From Scyliorhinus canicula (Eukaryota), in the NCBI RefSeq assembly GCF_902713615.1, contig NC_052149.1, positions 87,995,519-88,059,518 of the forward strand: DNA of 64,000 nucleotides, written 5' to 3'. The position numbers were made by a program, and so were the translations under genes. The notes under the pieces were generated by a model. The model was not told the origin of the DNA. It saw nothing but the letters and a program-made list of their open reading frames with translations, and made no database searches. The stretch's first letter is position 1, and every line of letters starts with the position of its first letter. Shown piece after piece: positions 1 to 21,800 of this stretch.

Positions 1-828
1 CTCATTAAAGCCTGTGAAAGATAAGATAGTAAATTCCATCTTGGCAGGGTGCTGCAGGGTGCATAAGGAAAAAATCATGGTACATGAACAGTTTACTGTT
101 TAACACTGACAATACTAATAAAACCTGAGGGAAAAAACAGGCACATTATTCCAAAATGAACACGGTTTATATCTGCCTGAAAGTTCCAGTCCTAAAGTAC
201 AAGCCTCGATCAATAATTAAAGTGGGCCCGGAAGATTTGAAGTGGTATTCTGGCCCTCCCAATCCAGGATATCATCTGTCACCCTTTGCCTCTATTCCAA
301 TTCTCCCTAGTCAGGCTAATCAAAATTATTGAGAAGATTTTTTTTGTAGAAGTGCACAAAGCTAACATATAAATCACCTGAAAATACTGAAATTATTCCA
401 TAAATTTACAGTAAATCAGAGATTTGAAAATGGAGAAATGTTTCTCAAACTCTAGTTCTTTCCACTTCCATTGTCTACAGAATCATGTAATATATCCAAA
501 AGGGATATGTGTATATCACATTCCACATTCAGGAAAATATTTTCCTATGGAAATTAATAATCTTACTCTATGATTTCTATACAGCATTGCTTATAAAAAT
601 TACCAGAAGTAAAACAAACATTTGTAAGAGTTCTGCTATTTTATAAGAAATCCTGTGCAACAAAGTAAATTACTTCTAGTTAGAAAGTGTCAATATTTCA
701 GATCCTACTTTTCAACTTTCCAGCAATAAGAACTGATGATTATGTCAAATGTAATATTCATTTTCTGCTTTATTTGCCAAAAGCTACAGGATACAAACTA
801 AGGTCAATCACTGCAAGTACAAAGATTT

Positions 829-900
829 TAGGTATATTGTTTATGAAGCTTACAGCCCAAACCAGAGAAAGCTGTGGCCTGATGTTCTGAAATGTAGCTA
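829..900 (+). promoter_or_regulatory. DIO1: SECIS element (form 1) in the 3' UTR of an upstream selenoprotein gene, probably DIO1
   Basis: Helix I 829-838 pairs with 891-900 (9/10). AUGAA at 843-847 and UGAU at 880-883 form the G.A/A.G core. Helix II is GCUUACAGC/GCUGUGGCC, with AAA (859-861) 11 nt after the core. Resembles the mammalian DIO1 SECIS as recalled. Gene identity is from synteny; no DIO1 coding exon is visible in the window. Confidence 0.85.
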
Positions 901-1161
901 AGAGCATGTAAATAAGTGAGATGAAGTTTTATATTCTGTACTTCTGTATATTAAACAATTACTACTCAACCAATGTTTTGAATGTTTTCATTGTATTAAG
1001 TGGAAAAGATAATTTATCCGAAAGGGAATGGAGTATTTATGTTACATTTAGTACCCCAAATTGTTTTAAATATAAAACCAATTCATAGTTGTAAGCAAAA
1101 TTGACATGAATGTCTTCAATTCAGAAGCTTAAGTATTGGTTGAAAGTTTAGTGTGGTGACC

Positions 1162-1167
1162 AATAAA
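1162..1167 (+). terminator. Candidate polyadenylation signal of the SECIS-containing transcript
   Basis: First AATAAA seen downstream of the SECIS. Confidence 0.4.
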
Positions 1168-1411
1168 CAAAGTCTGTGGACTGGCAGAATGAGGTGAAGC
1201 AGTGGAAAGTAAGAAAGTACAGTACAAGTACTGTTGGTGGGTCTGGAATTACTCTTGTGTCAGAAAAAATAATCATGTACCAGAGAAAGACCTTCCGAGT
1301 AGTGCAAGTTGAAGATGTTGCAGTAGTTGTGATGGACTATTCAGATGTTGATAAAAGATACTTTCAGGAGTTACTAAAGACGACTATGACAGTGTAGCAA
1401 AACAAGAAGAA

Positions 1412-1417
1412 TTTATT
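1412..1417 (-). terminator. Candidate polyadenylation signal of IFT25
   Basis: AATAAA on the - strand about 200 nt after the IFT25 stop codon. Confidence 0.45.
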
Positions 1418-1472
1418 CATATGGATCAATAATTATGCATTGTAACAAATATTGACAACATATTTGTACTAG

Positions 1473-1544
1473 GAGGTGGATTGACGACGCTAAATTGCCC
1501 CTCAATTGGTAAAGAATAATTGGGTACTCTAAAAAAATTTTAAA
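1473..1544 (+). mobile_element. 5'-truncated SINE in the IFT25 3' UTR
   Basis: SINE 3' part (aggtggattg...taaattgcccct...aattgggtactctaaa) between 13-bp TSD ATATTTGTACTAG at 1460-1472 and 1545-1557. Confidence 0.8.
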
Positions 1545-1617
1545 ATATTTGTACTAGTAATATTGTGCAGCTTCAGTGTTTGAAAATCTTGTTCTTCAAC
1601 AGTTGTGCTGCATAGAC

Positions 1618-1725
1618 TCAAGCACTTTCCTCTGTACCTTCCACTGTAACCTTGTGTATTGACACAAAGTGATCAAAACCAGATTTTATGAGAAACCGAA
1701 GGTGTGTGGCGCTGGTTCCATCCTG
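1618..1725 (-). CDS. IFT25: IFT25 coding exon 5 (last)
   Basis: QDGTSATHLRFLIKSGFDHFVSIHKVTVEGTEESA*; CAGCAG tandem acceptor, so the exon could start at 1722. Confidence 0.93.
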   Translation of the reverse strand, partial: QDGTSATHLRFLIKSGFDHFVSIHKVTVEGTEESA

Positions 1726-4700
1726 CTGCATAAGAAATATACTTTGTTACTTCACATTACCTTTTAAAAAAAATACTGCTATTCATTAGCTTAGTTGTAG
1801 AAATGCTGGTGAATGCATTACAGAGTTACATAGTCCAAAAGGTTCCAGGTTTGATTCCTGCTCTGTGCTCAGTTAGATTATTACAACTAATGGAACAAAG
1901 GGGCGCTAAATTGCTTTGATGTTTGAGTTAAGAAAAAAACTGTCTGTTCCTGTTCAGTGAAAACTACTGGAAAACACAATCAAGGGATAGGAACAGCTCT
2001 CAGCTTTTACACTGGTCAATCCTTATGTATGAATAGTGTCTAATCAGGCTAGGTGCTGGAGGCTAATGTTGTCAAGAAAGATAAAGCCTATATAGAGAGA
2101 TGAGGATAAAAATCAAACTTGATTTTGTTGAATTAATAAAATGGCATTATTTCTCATGTATATAATGCACAAGTCACAACATACTCATAGGTAAATTGCA
2201 TTTATCAATATTTAAGATGGATGTTTTTACACAGAATTGCATCAAATATATGGCAAATAAACAGGCCATTCAGCCCAACTAGTCCATGATGCTTCACAAG
2301 AGCCTCTCCATTTCTTTCTCATCTAAATCCTTTATATATTCGCTCCACTTATGTGCAGTGCATCTTGTGCTCCCAACATAATGAATATTATTTTGAACTA
2401 ACTATCAAAGATGATAAAATGCACGTTGTACAACACTGAATTTCCCCCACTTTTCACCATTGGAAGGTAATGGGCTTTCTGCTGCAACAGTGCTGTAGAA
2501 ATCAAGAACTTCAGTGGCATGCAAGAAATCAAGCTGCTCACTAGTCGCCTGGTGAGTTACCTACCTATAATCATTTTGTACAGAGTACTATATTATCGAA
2601 TGGAAGATGTATGTACTTACTGTAAATTCCTCCATTTGAAGCTGTTCCTCAGAGCGCTCAAGTTCTGGTAAAAAAGACAGCACACGAGGAAAATCACCAA
2701 ATTACCTAGAACAAAACAATTATTTTCCACAGTCATCTTGAAGATTTCATTAAAATGTTTGCTGAATGCACTTACCACTATTTGTTAAAGGTTCAAAATC
2801 TATTGGATCTCTTGCAACGCTTTTCTCAATACTCAGGCTGTGCACTGGAACAGTGATTCAAATAGGTGTTACTATTAAAATATATTGTAATTATTTTGAG
2901 TCTTGTTGTCTTTCTGCATTCTAATCAACAGTAACAAGATGGTTACATGTTTATTCGTGAACTTACACTGAAATATACACTCCTCAAAACTCAATATTTA
3001 TTCACTATACCTGAATTTCAGTAGCATAGATAATAAATAATTAACAACTTTTGTTCATTGCATCCTATTTTATACACCTACAAAACCAGGTAAAACTGCA
3101 TTTGTTACAATAAATTCTTAATATTATTTAATAGTTATTAATAAAGAGCAAAAATCTTACCATTATAACAGTGAATTTTCACAGAGCTAATTTTTATAAG
3201 ATTAGCAAAACTTAGGATAAATTCTTGAGGGAACATTCCTGTCGTGATCCAAAATGTTTCAGTATTACTGTAAGCAGAATTATGAGAGATCATAGATACT
3301 TCTATGACTTGGCATTTTTAAAAAATAATTTTCATCCCTCTTTTCTGATCCATGTTTGATTAGTTTCACAGTAGATGCCACCTGTTGATCCTTGAAGAGA
3401 TAGCCATTCTTCATATGAGCCTAGACAGAAACAACTTGCATTTATATAGCACCTTGTACATGATCAGCATCCCAAGGGGGTAGATAGTTAGGAAGAGGAG
3501 AGGAAATCAGCCAAAGTTTATGCTCCAGCATCTGAGCTATGATTTGTAATTCTTTACATTCTAATGAGAAATAAAAATATCCAAGGGGTTGACCCACCAT
3601 CTTGTGGTTAACTAAAAAAATTAAAAATAATATCAAACTTCAAGAAAAAGTGTATAATTTCTCAAAAATCGGTGGCATGACAGAAGATTGGACAGAATAT
3701 AAGAAACAGCAAAGAATGACTATAAGATTAATGATGGCAAAATTAGAGCATGACAGAAAGCTTGCTAGAAATAAAAAGACATCGTAAGCATTTCTGTAGA
3801 TAATTTAAAAATGGAGAGTTAACAAAGTGGGCTTTGGTCTTATAGAAAGTGAGTCTCGGGAATTAATTATGTAAATAAGGAGGTAGCCGATGAATTGAAG
3901 AGGTATTTTGCATCGATCCTCACTCAAGCATACAAGTAACATACCAGAAATAGTTGCAATCAGGAAATAGAAGAGAGGGAGGAACTCAAGAAAATTACAA
4001 TTACCTAGGAAAAGGTACTGAACAGATTGTTGGAATTGTGAACTGACAAGGCCACAGGTCCAGATGGACTTCATCCTAGGTACTTAAAAGATGTGTAATA
4101 TAGTTGATGCATTAATTTTAATTTTCCAAAAATTCCCTAGAATCTGTGATGGTTCCATTAGTTTGGAGAATAGCAAATGTAACACCTTTAGTCAAAAAGG
4201 GGGACAGAAAGCAGGAAACTAGAGGCCAGTTAACTTAACATCATAAGGTAAATATTCAAAACTATTCTTAAAGACTTCATAGCAGGGTACTCAGAAAGAT
4301 TCAATGTAATCAGACAGAGTCAACATGGTTTTGTGAGTGGGAAATTATGCGCGAGATTCAGAGCATTTTACGACTGCAGCATCTGGCCCCTAGGATCAGC
4401 GATCCTGCGCCGCACAGGGAGCCAGCACTTCACTGGAGCACAGCTCTAGCTGCCGATATGGGCACGAGCACAGACGGCGTGAGTTCCCGCATGCGCGCGG
4501 CTTGCCGTCTCTGCACCGGCCCTGACGCAACATGGCAGAGACCTGCAACATGGCGGAGACCTACAGGGGCCCGGAGCAGAGGAACATAGGCCCCCTCCCC
4601 ACCAGGCCGTCCCCTGCAGCCAGAACGCCGAGGTCCCACCAGGTAGGACCACACGAGAACGATGCCGGCGGGACACGGCCCATCGCGCGGGGAGAATCAC

Positions 4701-7700
4701 CGGGGCCATGTTGAGCAGAGAATCCCGCCCCATGTTTAACCAATTTATTGGAGAGTTTTGAAGAAGTAACATATGCTGTTGAAAGAGAGGACTGATGGAT
4801 GTGTACTTAGATTTCCAGAAGGCATTTAATAAGGTGTCACATCAGTGGTTATTGCAGAAAATAAAAGTTCATGCTTTAGCGAGGAACATTGGTATTGATA
4901 GAAGATTGCCAATTAACAGGAAACAGTGAATAGGCACAAATAGGTCATTTTCTGGTTGGCAGGATGGAATGAATGGCATGCCACAAGGATCAGTTCTGAG
5001 GCCTCAGCTTTTTACAATTCACATAAATGACTTGGATGAAGGGACTCAAAGTTATGATTGCTAAATCTGATATTGACACAAAGATAGGTGGGCAAGTAAG
5101 ATGTGAAGAAGCCACAAGGAGGCTACAAAGGGATGTCAACAGATTAAGTGAGTGGGCAAAGATCTGGCAAAAGGAGTTTCATGTGGGAAAATGTGAAATT
5201 GTCCGTAAGACACAGGAGCAGAATTAGGCCATTTGGCCGATCGAGTCTGCTCCACCATTCAATGAGATCATGACTGATTTGATATAGTCCTCAACTCCAT
5301 TTGCCCACCTTATCCCCATAACTCTTGATTCCCATACTGATTAAAAATCTGTCTATCTCAAAATAAAAAAGCATATAATCTAATTGCAGAGCTCTGAGAT
5401 GCAATAGGATCTGGTTGGTCTGGTGCATGAATTTCAAAAGGTTAGCATGCAGGTACAGCAAATAATTAGGAAATATGATAGAACACTACTGTTTATTGCG
5501 AGGGGTTGAATACAAAAGTAGGCAGGTTATGCTTCAGTTATACAGGGCATTGGTGAGACCATATCTGGAGTACTGTGTACAGTAATGGTCTCCTTCTTTA
5601 AGGAAGGATGTAAATGCATTGGAAGCAGCTCAGAGATTTACTAGACTAATACCTGAAATAGATGGTTGACTTACAAAGAAAGGTTGGACAGGTTATGTTC
5701 TACCCGCTAAAATTTAGACGGTAACTTGGTTAAAACATAAGATCCTGAGGGACCTTTACAGGGTGGACGTGGAGAGGATGTTTCCTCTTTCGAGAGAATA
5801 TAGAACTAGGTATCAGTGTTTAAAAATAAAGGGTCGTCCATTCAAGACAGAATTTTTTCTCTCAGAATTGTGATCTTTTGGAACTCTTCTTCAAAAGGCG
5901 GTTAAGCAGTATCGCTGAATATTTTTACGGCACAGATAGATAGATTTGTGATAAGCAAGGGGTTGAAAGGTTATTGTGGGTAGGTGCGAATGTGGAGCTG
6001 ATGTTACAATCAGAAGAGCAATGATCTTATTCAATGGCGGAACAGATTTGAGAGGCCAAGTGGCTTACTCATGCTCTTAATTCATATGTTCTTGGGTAAA
6101 GTTGATCATATGTTTCATTTATAATAATAATCTTTAGTAGTGTCACAAGTAGGCTTATATTAACACTGCAATAAAGTTACTGTGAAAATCCCCTAGTGAC
6201 CACACTCCGGCGCCTGTTAAGGTACACTGAAGGAGAATTCAGAATGTCCAATTCATCTAACGAGCATGTTTTTCAGGACATGTGGGAGGAAACCGGAGCA
6301 CCCTGAGGAAACCCACAGGGACACTGGGAGAATGTGCAGACTCTGCACAGACAGTGACCCAAGCCAGGAATCGAACCCAGGTCCCTTGTGCTGTGAAGCA
6401 ACAGTGCAAACCACTGTGCCACCTTGCTCATTTCGGGTAATCTCTTTATTTACCCAAGGTAGTCAAGAGGATACGTGCCCCATGACATTCAATGGCATTA
6501 CCAATGCTGAATCCCCCACAATCAACATCCTGGGGGTTACCATTGATCAGAACAAGAACTGGACTTGCCACAATAATCCCATGGCTACCAGAGCAGGTCA
6601 AAGGCTAGGAATCCCATGGTGAGTAACCTACCTCATGACCCCCCCCAAGCCTGCCCACCATCTATAAGGCACATGTCAGGAGTGTAATGGAACACTCTCT
6701 ACTTGGCTGGATGAGTACAACACTCAAGAGGCTCAACACCATACAGGACAAAGCAGCCCGCTTGATTACTCCCCCTTCCACAAACATTAAACCCTCCACC
6801 ATCGATGAACAGTGGCAGGCATGTGTACCATCCACAAGATGCACTGCAGTAACTCACCAAGGTTCCTTAGGCAGCACCTTCCAAACCCACGATCGCTACC
6901 ATCTAGGACAAGAGCAGCAGATACCTGGAAGCCCCACCACCTGGAGGTTCGCCTTCAAGTCACTCACCACCTTGACATGGAAATATATCACTGCTCCGCT
7001 CCTTCACTGTCGCTTGGTCAAAATCCTGGAACTCCCTCCCTAAATGTACATTGGATATATCTACACCCGGACTGCAGTGCTTCAAGAAGGCAATTCACCA
7101 CCATCTTCTGAAGGCAACTAAGGTGATAAATGCTGTCCCAACTGCGACGTCCACATCCCGTAAATGAATTTTTAAAAACCTGAATCATTCAGGAACACTC
7201 ACTGGAGAACAATGATTCTATCTTTCTTTCTCTGCTGCTCTGCAGGCCAAGCTTCTGATCTCAGCCGATCTGGTGAGGAAATAAGAACTAGCGAAATTGG
7301 GGGTGTCACGTGTAAGTTGTCTGCTGCAACCAGCATCGAAAATATGGGAAGGGGAGGTTGGTAGGACTGATGAGATATGGAATTGGGGCTGGAGGGAGCT
7401 TGCATATCTATAACGGCTCTCAGTTCACACCATTGTTACTGTACGTGTCAACCTTGGTTAGGTGGCATTCACGCCTCTTGATTCACAAGGTTCTGGATTC
7501 AAGTCCAGTTCAGGATTTGAGCACCAAAGTCAAGTCTAACACTCCAGTGCTGCACTGCCGGAGGTGCCATCTTTTAGACGAGATGTTAAGCCAAGGTCCT
7601 GTCTGCCCTTTCAGATGTACATAAAGACACCATGCCCAATATTAATCCCTCAGTGAACATAAATTACAGATTTGTCATCTCACTGCAGTGTGTGTGAGCT

Positions 7701-9827
7701 TGTTTTGCATAAAGTTGCCTGCTGTGTCTCCTACATTACAACAGTGATTACACTTCAAAAGCACTTCATTGGCTGTAAAACACTTTAAGTGATCTGGAGG
7801 GATTGAAGGAGCTGGAAGCGAAGTATGGGCTGGAGTAGGGAGAAATGTTTAGATACATGCAGGTTTGGGATTTTGCCAGAAAGGAGATACAGAGCTTCCC
7901 GAAGGAACCGGCCTCCACATTGCTGGAGGAGGTGCTGACGACAAGGGGACTGGAAAAGGGGGTAGTGTCAGCGGTTTACGGAGCTATTTTGGAAGAGGAT
8001 AAGGCACCACTGGAAGGGATCAAAGCAAAGTGGGAGGAAGAGTTGGGAGAGGTTATAGAGGAGGAGGTCTGGTGTGAGGTGCTCCGGAGAGTAAATGCCT
8101 CCACCTCATGTGCGAGGTTGGGGCTGATACAGCAGAAGGTGGTACACAGAGCACACCTCATGAGGGCGAGGATGAGCCAATTCTTTGAAGGAGTAGATGT
8201 GTGTGAGTGTTGCGGGAGCCTGCTAATCACGTTCATAAATTTTGGGCCTGTCCAAAGCTAGAGGATTACTGGAAGGAGGTTTTTATGGTAATTTCTAAAG
8301 TGGTGCCCGTGAAACTGGAATTTCTAAAGTGGTGCCCCCGGGAGGCCATATTCGGGGTGTCAGACCAGCCAGGGTTGGAAATGGGTGCGGAGGCAGATAT
8401 CGTAGCCTTCACCTCGTTGATCGTCCAAAGGCAAATCCTGATGGGATGGAGGGCAGCCTCTCCACCCTGTGCCCTGGCGTGGCGGGTTGTGAAGGTTAAG
8501 TTTGAACTGAGGGGAAGGACGGAGGGGTTCTACAATTCATGGGCATTATTCATTATGCACTTTCAAGAACTGGATAACATCGAACATTAGTTGGGGGGAT
8601 GTGTGGGAGGGTTGGGGGCAGGGGGGCTGTTTGTATTAAGGGTGACTATGGGTGATCCCTGGTTCCTTTTTGTCATTTGTTTGTGTAAACATGCAGGCTA
8701 ATGTTTGGGGTTTGGTGGGAAGATGGGATCGTTGTTATTGATAAGTGATCTGGAGGGTGTGAAAGATGCTATATAAATACAAGCCGTTTTTATCATTGGC
8801 CTGTATTTTGCGATCAGTCGCAAAGCAAGAGTGCCCACCGCTGACGAAGTACGTCTTGCTGAAAGATGTAGCATTTCTCTGTGAGAATTTCATCTCTATC
8901 ACTGTACAGTGGAACCGCAACTGATTGCAGCATTCTTTACTGGACATTTCAAACATGGAGCTGGAGTTATCGCATCAGGCTATCCAATCAGCCAATCACA
9001 TTAAAGGTTTTTCACAGGCACCCGACCAAGAAACAAAAAGCAGTGGAATGAATTCAGTTTTTAAAAAATAACAAATCGCATCTCTGTTAAAAACCCAGTT
9101 ACACCAGAGTGATATCAATGATTGTTAGCTCTGGGTGAGTAGAGGCCACAGCACAGCCTGTGATGGTGGTGCCCTGAATGACAGACCATGACTTCAGACT
9201 TGCATTACGTTCTGACGTTGCAGTCAGTTTCAGATGGGCAATGACAAAGAATGGCAATGGCAGTTCATAGCAAAAATATGGGTAATGATTCCCATGATCC
9301 CACCCCTCCTCCAGCACCACAGCCCTCCCAGAAACTGTGTTTAGCTAATTCCAGCCTCTTGACTGCAGCCAATTTTAACCGCTCTGCCGATGATGGTCGA
9401 GCCACCAGCTGTCAAAGGCCCTGATCCCTGGAATTCGCTCCCTAATTCTCTTCCTTCTTTAATAAACTCTATAAAATCTACCTGTTTGACAGATGACAGA
9501 GATTATGGTCATCTGCTATAATTTAATCGTGTGGTTAGGTGTCAAATTTTGTTTGATAACGCTTCTGGGGAGCACCTTGCTCTGTTTTACTTTGCTAAAG
9601 GCACTACCTGAATACCAGTTGTGGTTGTTATCTGAAGAGAAGAGAAGAGACTGATACCCTGGACACTCCTTGCAGCCTGTCCCCCCCCCCCCCCCCGCCG
9701 AGGCCGCCTCGGAGTGACGCCCAGGTCCTCACCCATCGATGATGTTCTCCGGTGGATGTTTCTCATCTCCAGAGGCCGCCAACACGACCTGCGTCCCCGC
9801 TACCATCAAACCAAAATCCTGCTTCAT
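1618..9827 (-). CDS. IFT25: Intraflagellar transport protein 25 (HSPB11), complete CDS: complement(join(1618..1725,2621..2664,2776..2844,3161..3267,9733..9827)), 140 aa
   Basis: Spliced translation MKQDFGLMVAGTQVVLAASGDEKHPPENIIDGNTETFWITTGMFPQEFILSF...ATHLRFLIKSGFDHFVSIHKVTVEGTEESA matches IFT25 motifs (DEKHPPENIIDG, TFWxTTGMFPQEF, FDHF). All introns GT-AG; 423 nt in total. Confidence 0.95.
2621..2664 (-). CDS. IFT25: IFT25 coding exon 4
   Basis: ELERSEEQLQMEEFT; acceptor ttttaccag, donor gtaagt. Confidence 0.92.
2776..2844 (-). CDS. IFT25: IFT25 coding exon 3
   Basis: VHSLSIEKSVARDPIDFEPLTNS; acceptor ttccag, donor gtaagt. Confidence 0.93.
3161..3267 (-). CDS. IFT25: IFT25 coding exon 2
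   Basis: NTETFWITTGMFPQEFILSFANLIKISSVKIHCYN; acceptor ttacag, donor gtaag. Confidence 0.95.
3600..6092 (+). mobile_element. Degenerate CR1-clade LINE (ORF2/RT remnant and 3' tail)
   Basis: Decayed CR1 motifs (PWLTK, QHGFV, LDFQKAF, PQGSVL, LVRPYLEYC) and a CR1-type 3' end. Confidence 0.85.
4349..4730. mobile_element. Non-autonomous DNA transposon (PIF/Harbinger-like MITE) nested in the CR1
   Basis: GC-rich insert splitting the CR1 sequence; termini gcgcgagattc and gaatcccgccc (imperfect TIR); 3-bp TSD tat/cat. Confidence 0.6.
6120..6428 (-). mobile_element. tRNA-derived V-SINE with L2-type tail
   Basis: Pol III B box (GGTTCGATTCC), V-domain, tail ...gcctacttgtgacactactaaagattatta. Confidence 0.8.
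6475..7170 (+). mobile_element. LINE 3' fragment (CR1/L2 group)
   Basis: RT C-terminal remnant INILGVTID...YKAHVRSVMEHSLLGW...LNTIQDKAARLI. Confidence 0.7.
7450..8785 (+). mobile_element. DeuSINE (SacSINE1-like) interrupted by an L1-like fragment at 7802-8741
   Basis: Deu-domain sequence (gtgctgcactgccggaggtgcc...cctacattacaacagtg...ctatataaat). The L1 ORF2 C-terminus lies between a 16-bp TSD TAAGTGATCTGGAGGG at 7786-7801 and 8742-8757. Confidence 0.75.
9733..9827 (-). CDS. IFT25: IFT25 coding exon 1
   Basis: MKQDFGLMVAGTQVVLAASGDEKHPPENIIDG; donor GTGAG; phase 2. Confidence 0.93.
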
Positions 9828-18800: not shown

Positions 18801-21800
18801 TGACATGGCGGGATTTATAAAATTGGAAAGGGTCAAATTTGCCCTGAGAGGATCAATACAAGGGTTCTATAAACGATGGCAGCCTTTTCTGGACTTCCTG
18901 GCTCAAAGATAGGTGTCTTGGTCAATAGCAGCAGCAACCCCGGTGGGGGAGGGGGGGGTGTGTAAGGGTGTTCCTTATTGTAGTTTCTATTATGTAACTT
19001 AATATTGTGTTAATTTGCGTTGTTGTTAAAATGCTGTGTTGTTCATGGAGGTGGGGGCGAATGTTTATGATTGCTAATATTGTTATTTTTGGTATTTTAT
19101 TATGGTTCGATGTTGTTGTATAAATTCAAAATTTTTCAATAAAAATTATTTCAAAAAAAAAAGCAGTGCTTTATATAATTTCAGATGTTTAATGGTGTCG
19201 GAAAAATTGGAAGAAATCCAGTCTTTTCGAGGTTTGATGTGCCTGGATCTGTCCAGCTGTAAGCTGGGGGATGAACACGAGCTCCTAACGCACTTGACAT
19301 CTGAAACCTTAGTGAGGTACGGTATGCGTTGTGGATACAACAAAAACATTATGAGAAATGTTTACCAGTTCCATGCAAAATAAATCTTCATGGCATTGTC
19401 TCATGCCCTGAGCAGACTTAACACATTAGCAGCATACTTGACTGGTACTTGAGTCCTTAAATGACTTGGCAGCTCCAGAGCAAAAGCAGTTCACAACATG
19501 CACTCAGTTATTTTCCTGACCATAATTAGGGCCAGTAATTTAGCAGTAATTTAGCAGAATTGTTCAGTGCTGTTGATTATTTCTCAATACCACCACTGCC
19601 CTGCTCCAATGGTCCATCTTCATAAAGTAGTACTTTAAATGTCTTTCCTTGTAAAGTTTAACTGTCTATTGACGTAAAAGCCTGCCTGATTCACTAATGC
19701 CCTTGTCTGGTCTGGCCTACATGTGACTCCAGATCTATAGCAATATGGCTGACTGTTATCTGCCCTCTGAAATGGCCCAGCAAACCACACAGTAGTAGAA
19801 AATTGCTACGAAGTCTGAACGGATGGAAACCAGTGTTGCAATCCCGGTTGAGGTGGTAACTAATTCCACAGGCCGGCCGCTCTGAATAAAGAAATTTATC
19901 TTCATCTCTGTCCTGAATGGTCTACCCCGTATCTTCAGATTGTGACCCCTGCTTCTGAACACCCCCACCATCCGAAACATCCTGCATCTACCCTGTCTTG
20001 TCCTGTTAGAATTTTCTAGGTTTCTATGAGATTCCTCCCTCATTCTTCTGAACTCCAGTGAATACAATCCTATCCAATTCAATCTCTCCTCCTACATCAG
20101 TCCCTGCCATCCCAGCAATCAGTCTGGTAAACCTTTGCTGCACTCCCTCTAGAGCAGGAACATGTTTCCTCAGATAAGGAGAACAAAACTGCACACAATA
20201 CTCCCGGTGTGGCCTCGCCAAGGCCCTGTACAATTGCAGCGAGACAGCCCTGTTCCTGTGTTTGAACCCTCTCGCTATGAAGGCCAACATACCATTTGCC
20301 TTCTTTATGGTCGGCTGTACCTGCATTCTTGCCTTCAGTGACTGGTGTACGGGGATGCTCCGGTCTCTTTGCACGTTCCCCTATCTATCTCAATGCACTA
20401 CCCCTAAACTCATGCACTTTAATTTTACACTCAAATCTCTTATGCGGGACTCTATCAAAAGCCTTTTAAAAGTCCAAATACAACACATCCATTGCCCCCC
20501 CCCCCCCCCCTCTGTCAACTCTACTAGTTACACCCTCGAAGAATTCCTGTAGATTTGCCAAGCATGATCTCCCCTTTGTAAATCCATGCTGACTCTGTCC
20601 AATCCTGTCACTATTTTCTCATTGCTCTGCTATAAAATCTTTGATAATGGATTCTAGAATTCTCCCCACTAGTGACATCAGGCTTACTGGTCTATAATTC
20701 ACTGTTTTCTCTCTACCTCCCTTTTTCAAATAGTGGAGTTACATTAGCTACCCTCCAATCTACAGAGACTGTTCCAGAGTCTGTCGAATGCTGGAAGATG
20801 ACCATCAATGCATCCGCTGTTTCTAGGACCACTTCTTTAAATACTCTGGGCTGTAGATTATCATGCCCTGGGGATTTATCAGCTTTGAATCCCAACAATT
20901 TCCCCAACAGCATCTCTCTACTAATATTGATCATCTTTACTTCCTCCCTCTCACTAAACCCTGCATTCCTCAACATTTCTGGTATCTGATTTATGTCCTC
21001 AATGTGAAGACAGAATCGAAGTGTGTATTTAATTGCTCAACCATTTCTTTGTCCCCTATTCTCCATTCCCCTCTTTCTGACTGTAAGGGACCTTCACTTA
21101 TCTTCACCAAACCTTTTTCTCTTTACATGCCTATAGAAGCTTTTACAGTCAGTTTTTATGTTCCCTGCAAGCTTACTTTAGTACTCTATTTTCCCCTTCT
21201 TAATCAATCCCTTGGTCCTTCTTTGCTGAATTCTAAACTGCTCCCAATCATCAGACCTGTTGTTTTTCTTGGCCATTTTGTAAGCTTCTTCTTTGGATCG
21301 AGTATTATCTTTAATTTCCCTTGTAAGCCATGGATTGGCTGCCTCTCCTGTTTTACTTTTGTGCCAGATAGAAATAAACATTGTTGCAATTCGCACATGA
21401 GCTCCTTGAATCTTTGCCATTGTCTATCTACTGTCGTCCCTTTAAGTAACATTTCCTAATCTATCATAATCAACCTGCACCTCATACCATCGTAGTTTCC
21501 TTTATTAAGATTCAGGACCCTAGTCTCAGAATCAAATTCTTCACACTCCATCTTGATGAAAAATTCTATCATGTTATGGTCACTCATCCCCAAGGATCTC
21601 GCACAAGATTGCCAATGATTCCGATCTCATCTCACATTACCAGTCTAGGATGGCTCGCTGCTGATAGTTGGTTCCTCAACGTATTGGTCCAGAAAACCAT
21701 CCCGTATACACTCAGGAATTCCGCCTCTACGGTATTGTGGCTTATTTGATTTGATTTGATTTGCACAATCTATATGTAGATTAAAATCACCCATAATTAC

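Follow-up and report, generated by a model that had tools for sequence, protein, structure and literature searches.

A conserved hairpin between DIO1 and IFT25/HSPB11 in the catshark Scyliorhinus canicula, and its probable identity as the DIO1 SECIS element

Genes and features at the locus

The DNA analysed here (hereafter, the window) is a stretch of 64,000 nucleotides from the catshark Scyliorhinus canicula (RefSeq assembly GCF_902713615.1, contig NC_052149.1), and all positions are counted from its first letter. A complete IFT25/HSPB11 gene lies on the - strand at 1398-9827, with the start codon near 9827 and the poly(A) site near 1398. Its coding exons were assigned to 3161-3268, 2776-2844, 2622-2664, and 1618-1725; three of its introns were backed by RNA joints, and the protein shares about 97% identity with IFT25 of Scyliorhinus torazame. 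Minor alternative RNA joints of the same gene were seen at 2701-3157 and 2845-3163. Note that, at position 1486 in the IFT25 3' UTR, the assembly has G, whereas C is the letter in every read and contig of four runs taken from different studies; the discrepancy is either an allele of the individual used for the assembly or an assembly error.

On the + strand, the beginning of the window is best explained as the distal 3' UTR of the iodothyronine deiodinase gene DIO1, the coding exons of which lie upstream of the window, and within this region stands a two-helix hairpin at 826-903. The hairpin, which was unannotated until now, is the expected orthologue of an element of a very well-known kind, the SECIS (the signal by which a UGA codon is recoded in selenoprotein genes). 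The features are collected in Table 1.

Table 1. Features assigned at the DIO1-IFT25 end of the window (strand given relative to the deposited sequence)
Feature	Positions	Strand	Evidence or remark
Distal DIO1 3' UTR, probable	1-1000	+	Stranded oligo-dT reads opposite to IFT25 over 201-1000; colinearity with zebra shark
Whole hairpin, putative SECIS of type 1 architecture	826-903	+	Unconstrained fold; sub-threshold full-length SECIS_1 match; 94% identity to zebra shark
Helix I, 5' arm	828-838	+	Pairs with 891-901; G.G mismatch 832/897
Internal loop, 5' side, 4 nt	839-842	+	
AUGA, 5' half of the putative SECIS core (UGAN)	843-846	+	Invariant in 5/5 aligned species; aligned to AUGA of SECIS_1
Helix II, 5' arm	847-856	+	Pairs with 871-880; C.C mismatch 849/878
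Apical loop, open, 14 nt	857-870	+	Unpaired AAA 859-861
Helix II, 3' arm	871-880	+	
UGAU, 3' half of the putative core (KGAW)	880-883	+	GA 881-882 opposite G845 and A846
Internal loop, 3' side, 7 nt	884-890	+	UGAA 888-891 runs into helix I
Helix I, 3' arm	891-901	+	
ATTAAA, likelier DIO1 poly(A) signal	950-955	+	Reads zero after bin 801-1000; kept in zebra shark and L005
AATAAA, alternative DIO1 poly(A) signal	1162-1167	+	Unreached by + strand reads in X35
IFT25/HSPB11 3' UTR	1398-1617	-	AATAAA 1417-1412; about 50-fold fall of depth below 1400; loose ends at 1398
IFT25/HSPB11 last coding exon	1618-1725	-	Stop codon 1620-1618; RNA joint 1725 to 2621

Architecture of the hairpin

An earlier note on this DNA, made from the letters of the sequence, had described a two-helix hairpin with AUGA, UGA, and an apical AAA, and had read it as the SECIS of a selenoprotein gene outside the window, likely DIO1. 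The hairpin itself was confirmed: the letters match the description, and RNAfold without constraints gave the same two-helix hairpin as the minimum-free-energy structure. Helix I has 10 of its 11 positions paired (one G.G mismatch and one U.G pair), and helix II has 9 of its 10 positions paired (one C.C mismatch and two U.G pairs; letters of the + strand in both cases); in the catshark copy, the core and the AAA are intact, as are 19 of the 21 stem pairs.

The SECIS core has been published as UGAN/KGAW (PMC3753652), with tandem sheared G.A/A.G pairs beside a regular helix and an internal loop (PMC3753652, PMC1874613). The UGAA/UGAU of the window agrees with this core: AUGA at 843-846 is followed by A, which gives UGAN on the 5' side, and UGAU at 880-883 gives KGAW on the 3' side. 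As in type 1 elements, helix I lies below an internal loop, which has 4 nt on its 5' side and 7 nt on its 3' side, and the AAA of the apical loop begins 12 nt past the core (A846), within the approximately 10-13 nt that characterise type 1 placement. The apical loop was unpaired in both the minimum-free-energy and the centroid folds; since it carries no extra helix, the architecture is therefore type 1, the type under which the human DIO1 SECIS is listed (PMC2761289).

Neither 820-910 (z = -0.5) nor 826-903 (z = -1.3) has an unusual folding energy, and energy alone does not discriminate the hairpin. The - strand of the same region gave a different fold, and the SECIS motifs were not found in it. 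A reading of the - strand as an element of a long IFT25 3' UTR was also considered and was rejected, as the motifs and the G-U pairs fit the + strand only.

Conservation of sequence and structure

The window was compared with four orthologous loci: zebra shark (L004), the lizard Pogona (L003), and two ray-like contigs (L002 and L005). Window positions 659-1078 align to 15672-15278 of the zebra-shark locus on the - strand. In the identity profile against zebra shark, conservation in the region peaks at 826-903, with 94% identity; most of the UTR reaches 40-60%, and the last coding exon of IFT25 reaches 88%. The orthologous zebra-shark element has ATGA at 15506-15503, TGAT at 15468-15465, and a perfect helix I of 11 bp. 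The ray-like contig L002, which joins the 3' ends of LRRC42, IFT25, and DIO1 and of which IFT25 is closest to that of rays and skates, aligns well to the window over 800-915 only.

AUGA and AAA are invariant in all five aligned species, and UGAA 888-891 is kept in the four cartilaginous fishes. UGAU is identical in catshark, zebra shark, and lizard; the two ray-like contigs have UAAU in its place. Each of the five orthologues folds into a two-helix hairpin, of which the catshark copy is the least stable. At 832 the catshark copy carries a derived change from C to G, which breaks a pair of helix I (G.G), and where it has the C.C mismatch 849/878, both ray-like sequences have an A-U pair.

The pair counts cover the four cartilaginous fishes and, because MAFFT misplaced the helix I of the lizard, do not include that species. 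In the resulting 84 stem cells, 94% were paired (97.7% of the cells of helix I and 90% of those of helix II), against 27-43% when the partners were slid. The structure was maintained, and 13 of the 21 pairs vary among the four species; in helix I the variation includes a double change from UA to CG and a CG/UG/UA series. A shuffle control on the stem pairing was not significant, being without power at four sequences. G-U pairs make up 13 of the 84 stem cells, and on the - strand these would be A.C mismatches; the structure is thus specific to the + strand, that is, to the strand of DIO1.

The UAAU of the ray-like contigs lies at 1788-1791 (+) of L005 and at 2469-2466 (-) of L002. In both, the canonical G of the core GA is absent and both stems are kept; these two orthologues would fail the KGAW feature. 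No other SECIS candidate was found in the 3' UTR of L002 or L005, and L005, in which the element has UAAU, keeps the DIO1 frame open through an in-frame TGA. As judged from the sequences, the A.A pair may be tolerated, or selenocysteine decoding may have been lost.

Gene order and the link to DIO1

The tail-to-tail order of DIO1 and HSPB11, which the earlier note had carried over from human, was recovered in sharks and in a lizard. In S. torazame, the tail-to-tail neighbour of IFT25, 2,989 nt past the end of the IFT25 coding region, encodes a T4_deiodinase domain, and in white shark, zebra shark, and Pogona a gene of 246-253 aa has the same place and orientation. The IFT25 locus of pike has no DIO1 neighbour.

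The zebra-shark locus contains an intact DIO1, with exons carrying an in-frame TGA and with the stop codon at 18912-18914. The element orthologous to the catshark hairpin (15506) is the sole SECIS candidate in the 4.2 kb between this stop codon and IFT25. In the ray-like RNA contig L005, the DIO1 frame (in-frame TGA at 299-301, stop codon at 668-670) and the hairpin (approximately 1738-1813) are on one molecule, the hairpin being located 1.1 kb past the stop codon. In the lizard, the sole Rfam match between DIO1 and IFT25 is SECIS_1, in the syntenic place, and the sequence of this element is similar to that of the catshark around AUGA, AAA, and CCUGAU. The same lizard locus carries an intact Tc1/mariner-like transposase ORF of 344 aa (L003 18057-19091, +) in the last intron of DIO1.

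Continuity from the DIO1 coding sequence to the hairpin was seen in the other species only; for the catshark, the link is given by orthology of the hairpin to the sole candidate past zebra-shark DIO1 and to the element on the L005 mRNA, which supports the assignment to a DIO1 gene outside the window. Positions 1-1000 are colinear with the DIO1-to-IFT25 interval of zebra shark, and by scaling this interval the DIO1 stop codon was estimated at about 1.4 kb before position 1, which would place the hairpin about 2.2 kb into the 3' UTR. The best explanation of its placement is the distal 3' UTR of DIO1, about 2 kb past the stop codon, with the poly(A) site following some 0.1-0.3 kb later.

Transcription and transcript ends

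The direction of transcription was read from a stranded oligo-dT run (X35). In this run, all reads of IFT25 exons and intron joints were on the + strand, so that reads on the - strand represent + strand RNA. Over 201-1000 the reads were on the - strand, with depths of 0.57, 0.47, 3.19, and 1.23 in the successive 200-nt bins. The run therefore shows + strand RNA across the hairpin region; this support consists of about 11 reads from the one run.

No reads of + strand RNA were found beyond 1000 in X35, which suggests that the DIO1 transcript ends near 975 and uses the ATTAAA at 950 in preference to the AATAAA at 1162. The earlier note had assigned 1 to about 1190 to the DIO1 3' UTR; the assignment as UTR stands, with + strand RNA over 201-1000, and its end may have to be moved back to about 975, as the reads stop by about 1000.

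Transcription from the opposite side was also seen. In a single-cell run (X34), the hairpin region was covered by IFT25-sense read-through only, at 1-4% of the IFT25 level, and this read-through crosses the DIO1 3' UTR, giving a convergent overlap of transcription at 1-1400 on both strands. Assembled RNA contigs merge the 3' ends of both genes, at the catshark locus and in L002. The Logan contigs of two runs (X5 and X6) reach from about -121 to 1503 and also cover introns of IFT25; as evidence of mature mRNA these contigs were set aside, owing to the intron coverage, the lack of strand, and a depth that is a contig-wide mean.

Comparison with the Rfam SECIS model

The covariance-model check that the earlier note had proposed gave a mixed result. 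With the whole window and the Rfam gathering thresholds there was no match, and with 700-1000 (301 bases) there was no match to SECIS_1 (RF00031) at E <= 10. When the 78 bases of 826-903 were searched, SECIS_1 scored 12.4 bits (E = 5.8), under its gathering score of 35, and by the criterion of Rfam the catshark element is a non-member. The alignment nevertheless runs over all 64 model positions (window 835-893) with AUGA, AAAC, and CUGAUG matched, and SECIS_1 was the best of 4227 Rfam families on 826-903; no other family fits the hairpin.

The same model was applied to the orthologues. The lizard DIO1 SECIS scored 28.8 bits, likewise under the cut-off of 35, the two ray-like elements scored 17.4 and 17.1 bits, and the zebra-shark element gave no match at E <= 10 (roughly under 18 bits). 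Since the lizard, ray-like, and zebra-shark elements are also under 35 bits, the SECIS_1 threshold is uninformative for the DIO1 element; the catshark score came close to refuting the assignment, and the test, which the lizard element fails too, is too strict. At the threshold of Rfam, DIO1 elements go unrecognised in sharks, rays, and a lizard alike. For comparison, SECISearch3 uses an Infernal model of its own, with a recommended threshold of 10 (PMC3753652).

Identity and predicted function

From its descent and architecture, the + strand hairpin at 826-903 is very probably the type 1 SECIS of catshark DIO1, and the reading of the earlier note is supported. Among eukaryotic SECIS elements, that of vertebrate DIO1 was the first to be described (Berry et al. 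1991, Nature 353:273; cited in PMC2761289). The catshark element has in common with it the DIO1/IFT25 tail-to-tail neighbourhood, the strand, and the type 1 architecture, and shares with the lizard element the core letters AUGA ... AAA ... CCUGAU. It differs in having one mismatch in each helix and a function that is predicted only, and the distance from the stop codon to the SECIS is also different: about 2.2 kb in catshark (an estimate) and 3.4 kb in zebra shark, versus 0.9 kb in lizard and 1.1 kb in the ray-like mRNA. As the expected orthologue of the first SECIS described, the element by itself changes nothing biologically. It supplies the 3' UTR signal for a correct annotation of catshark DIO1, and the case illustrates that a SECIS can be located from the sequence alone and that a selenoprotein gene outside the window can be deduced from its SECIS.

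The manner in which the element would act can be drawn from established SECIS biology (PMC3753652, PMC2761289, PMC1874613). G845.A882 and A846.G881 would form tandem sheared pairs and thereby a kink-turn-like core, to which SECIS-binding protein 2 (SBP2) would be expected to bind, and helix II would hold the unpaired AAA at a fixed distance from the core. SBP2 and the AAA would then bring eEFSec and the selenocysteine tRNA to the ribosome, and the in-frame UGA of DIO1 would be decoded as selenocysteine rather than as a stop. The predicted core resembles the kink-turns bound by proteins of the L7Ae family in its tandem sheared G.A/A.G pairs, helix, and internal loop; unlike in these, the internal loop of a SECIS is larger, helix II has a fixed length and carries unpaired A residues, and the role is in translational recoding, not in RNP assembly. 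Present-day use of the catshark element in selenocysteine insertion is a prediction, which we regard as moderately probable.

Alternative readings

The strongest alternative concerns the present-day function and is a sub-case of the proposed identity: DIO1 may recently have been disabled in the catshark, with the element still transcribed and nearly intact and yet out of use. No C-terminal DIO1 ORF (75-240 aa) of the catshark species was found in the protein collection, in which those of the ray-like species and of S. torazame are present, and the derived G at 832, with the least stable fold among the five orthologues, would be weakly in keeping with such a loss. Note that the failure to find catshark DIO1 in the searches of the protein collection is weak evidence, as full-length selenocysteine-containing proteins seem to be absent there. 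Against such a relic, 19 of the 21 stem pairs are intact, as are the core and the AAA, the identity of 94% to zebra shark leaves no visible decay, + strand RNA is present, and a deiodinase is annotated at the locus in the sister species S. torazame. We consider the relic rather unlikely. If the DIO1 frame were truly broken, an intact SECIS would mean that a shark lost its type I deiodinase very recently.

Quite unlikely, in our estimate, is the more unusual case of an intact and transcribed SECIS standing behind a truly broken catshark DIO1 frame, or being kept for a role other than selenocysteine insertion into DIO1. We would judge in the same way the related case of ray-like UAAU elements that are still functional, which would be natural SECIS elements without the canonical core GA.

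A conserved RNA or DNA element of some other role that is merely SECIS-like, such as a convergent 3'-end regulatory hairpin or a small-RNA precursor, could account for the stems kept in the two ray-like orthologues with UAAU for UGAU, and the IFT25-sense read-through across the region and the contigs from RNA runs that merge the 3' ends of both genes would fit with it. Such an element would not be expected to have every SECIS-defining motif at canonical spacing, invariant in sharks and lizard, or to have G-U pairs that tie the structure to the DIO1 strand. Moreover, SECIS_1 alone among the Rfam families fits the hairpin, and if the role were another one, the intact DIO1 genes of shark, ray-like species, and lizard would be left with no SECIS candidate. 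This alternative is very improbable, and the DIO1 SECIS remains the preferred reading.

The rarity of the hairpin was evaluated with a motif-plus-stem pattern (ATGA, AA 10-13 nt further on, GA, and helices I and II of at least 9 pairs with at most one mismatch each), which was drawn up after the candidate had been seen. On both strands of the 64 kb (128 kb in total), the pattern matched at position 843 only. In first-order Markov sequence, 0.05 matches per 128 kb were obtained at this 9/9 setting and 0.1 at 8/7 pairs; with looser settings, the simulated counts were near the observed ones. When the search space is limited to the approximately 2 kb of + strand that follow DIO1, about 0.001 matches would be expected by chance. 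An accidental hairpin of AT-rich non-coding sequence, with ATGA, AAA, and TGAT present by coincidence, would agree with the z values of only -0.5 to -1.3, the SECIS_1 score well under the Rfam cut-off, and the post hoc pattern, but in view of these low expectations and of the sequence conservation data, by which it appears already contradicted (826-903 is the best-conserved stretch within 1.8 kb, and orthologous hairpins with stem-preserving changes occur in three other cartilaginous fishes), its probability is negligible.

Other features of the window

Several further features were observed in introns of IFT25. The regions 5200-5800, with very high contig depth, many variant letters, and loose ends, and 6250-7100, with SINE-like ORF translations, are interspersed repeats. 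At 7845-8590 (+), in the first IFT25 intron, ORFs of 138 and 127 aa overlap each other and resemble part of a protein from a transposable element.
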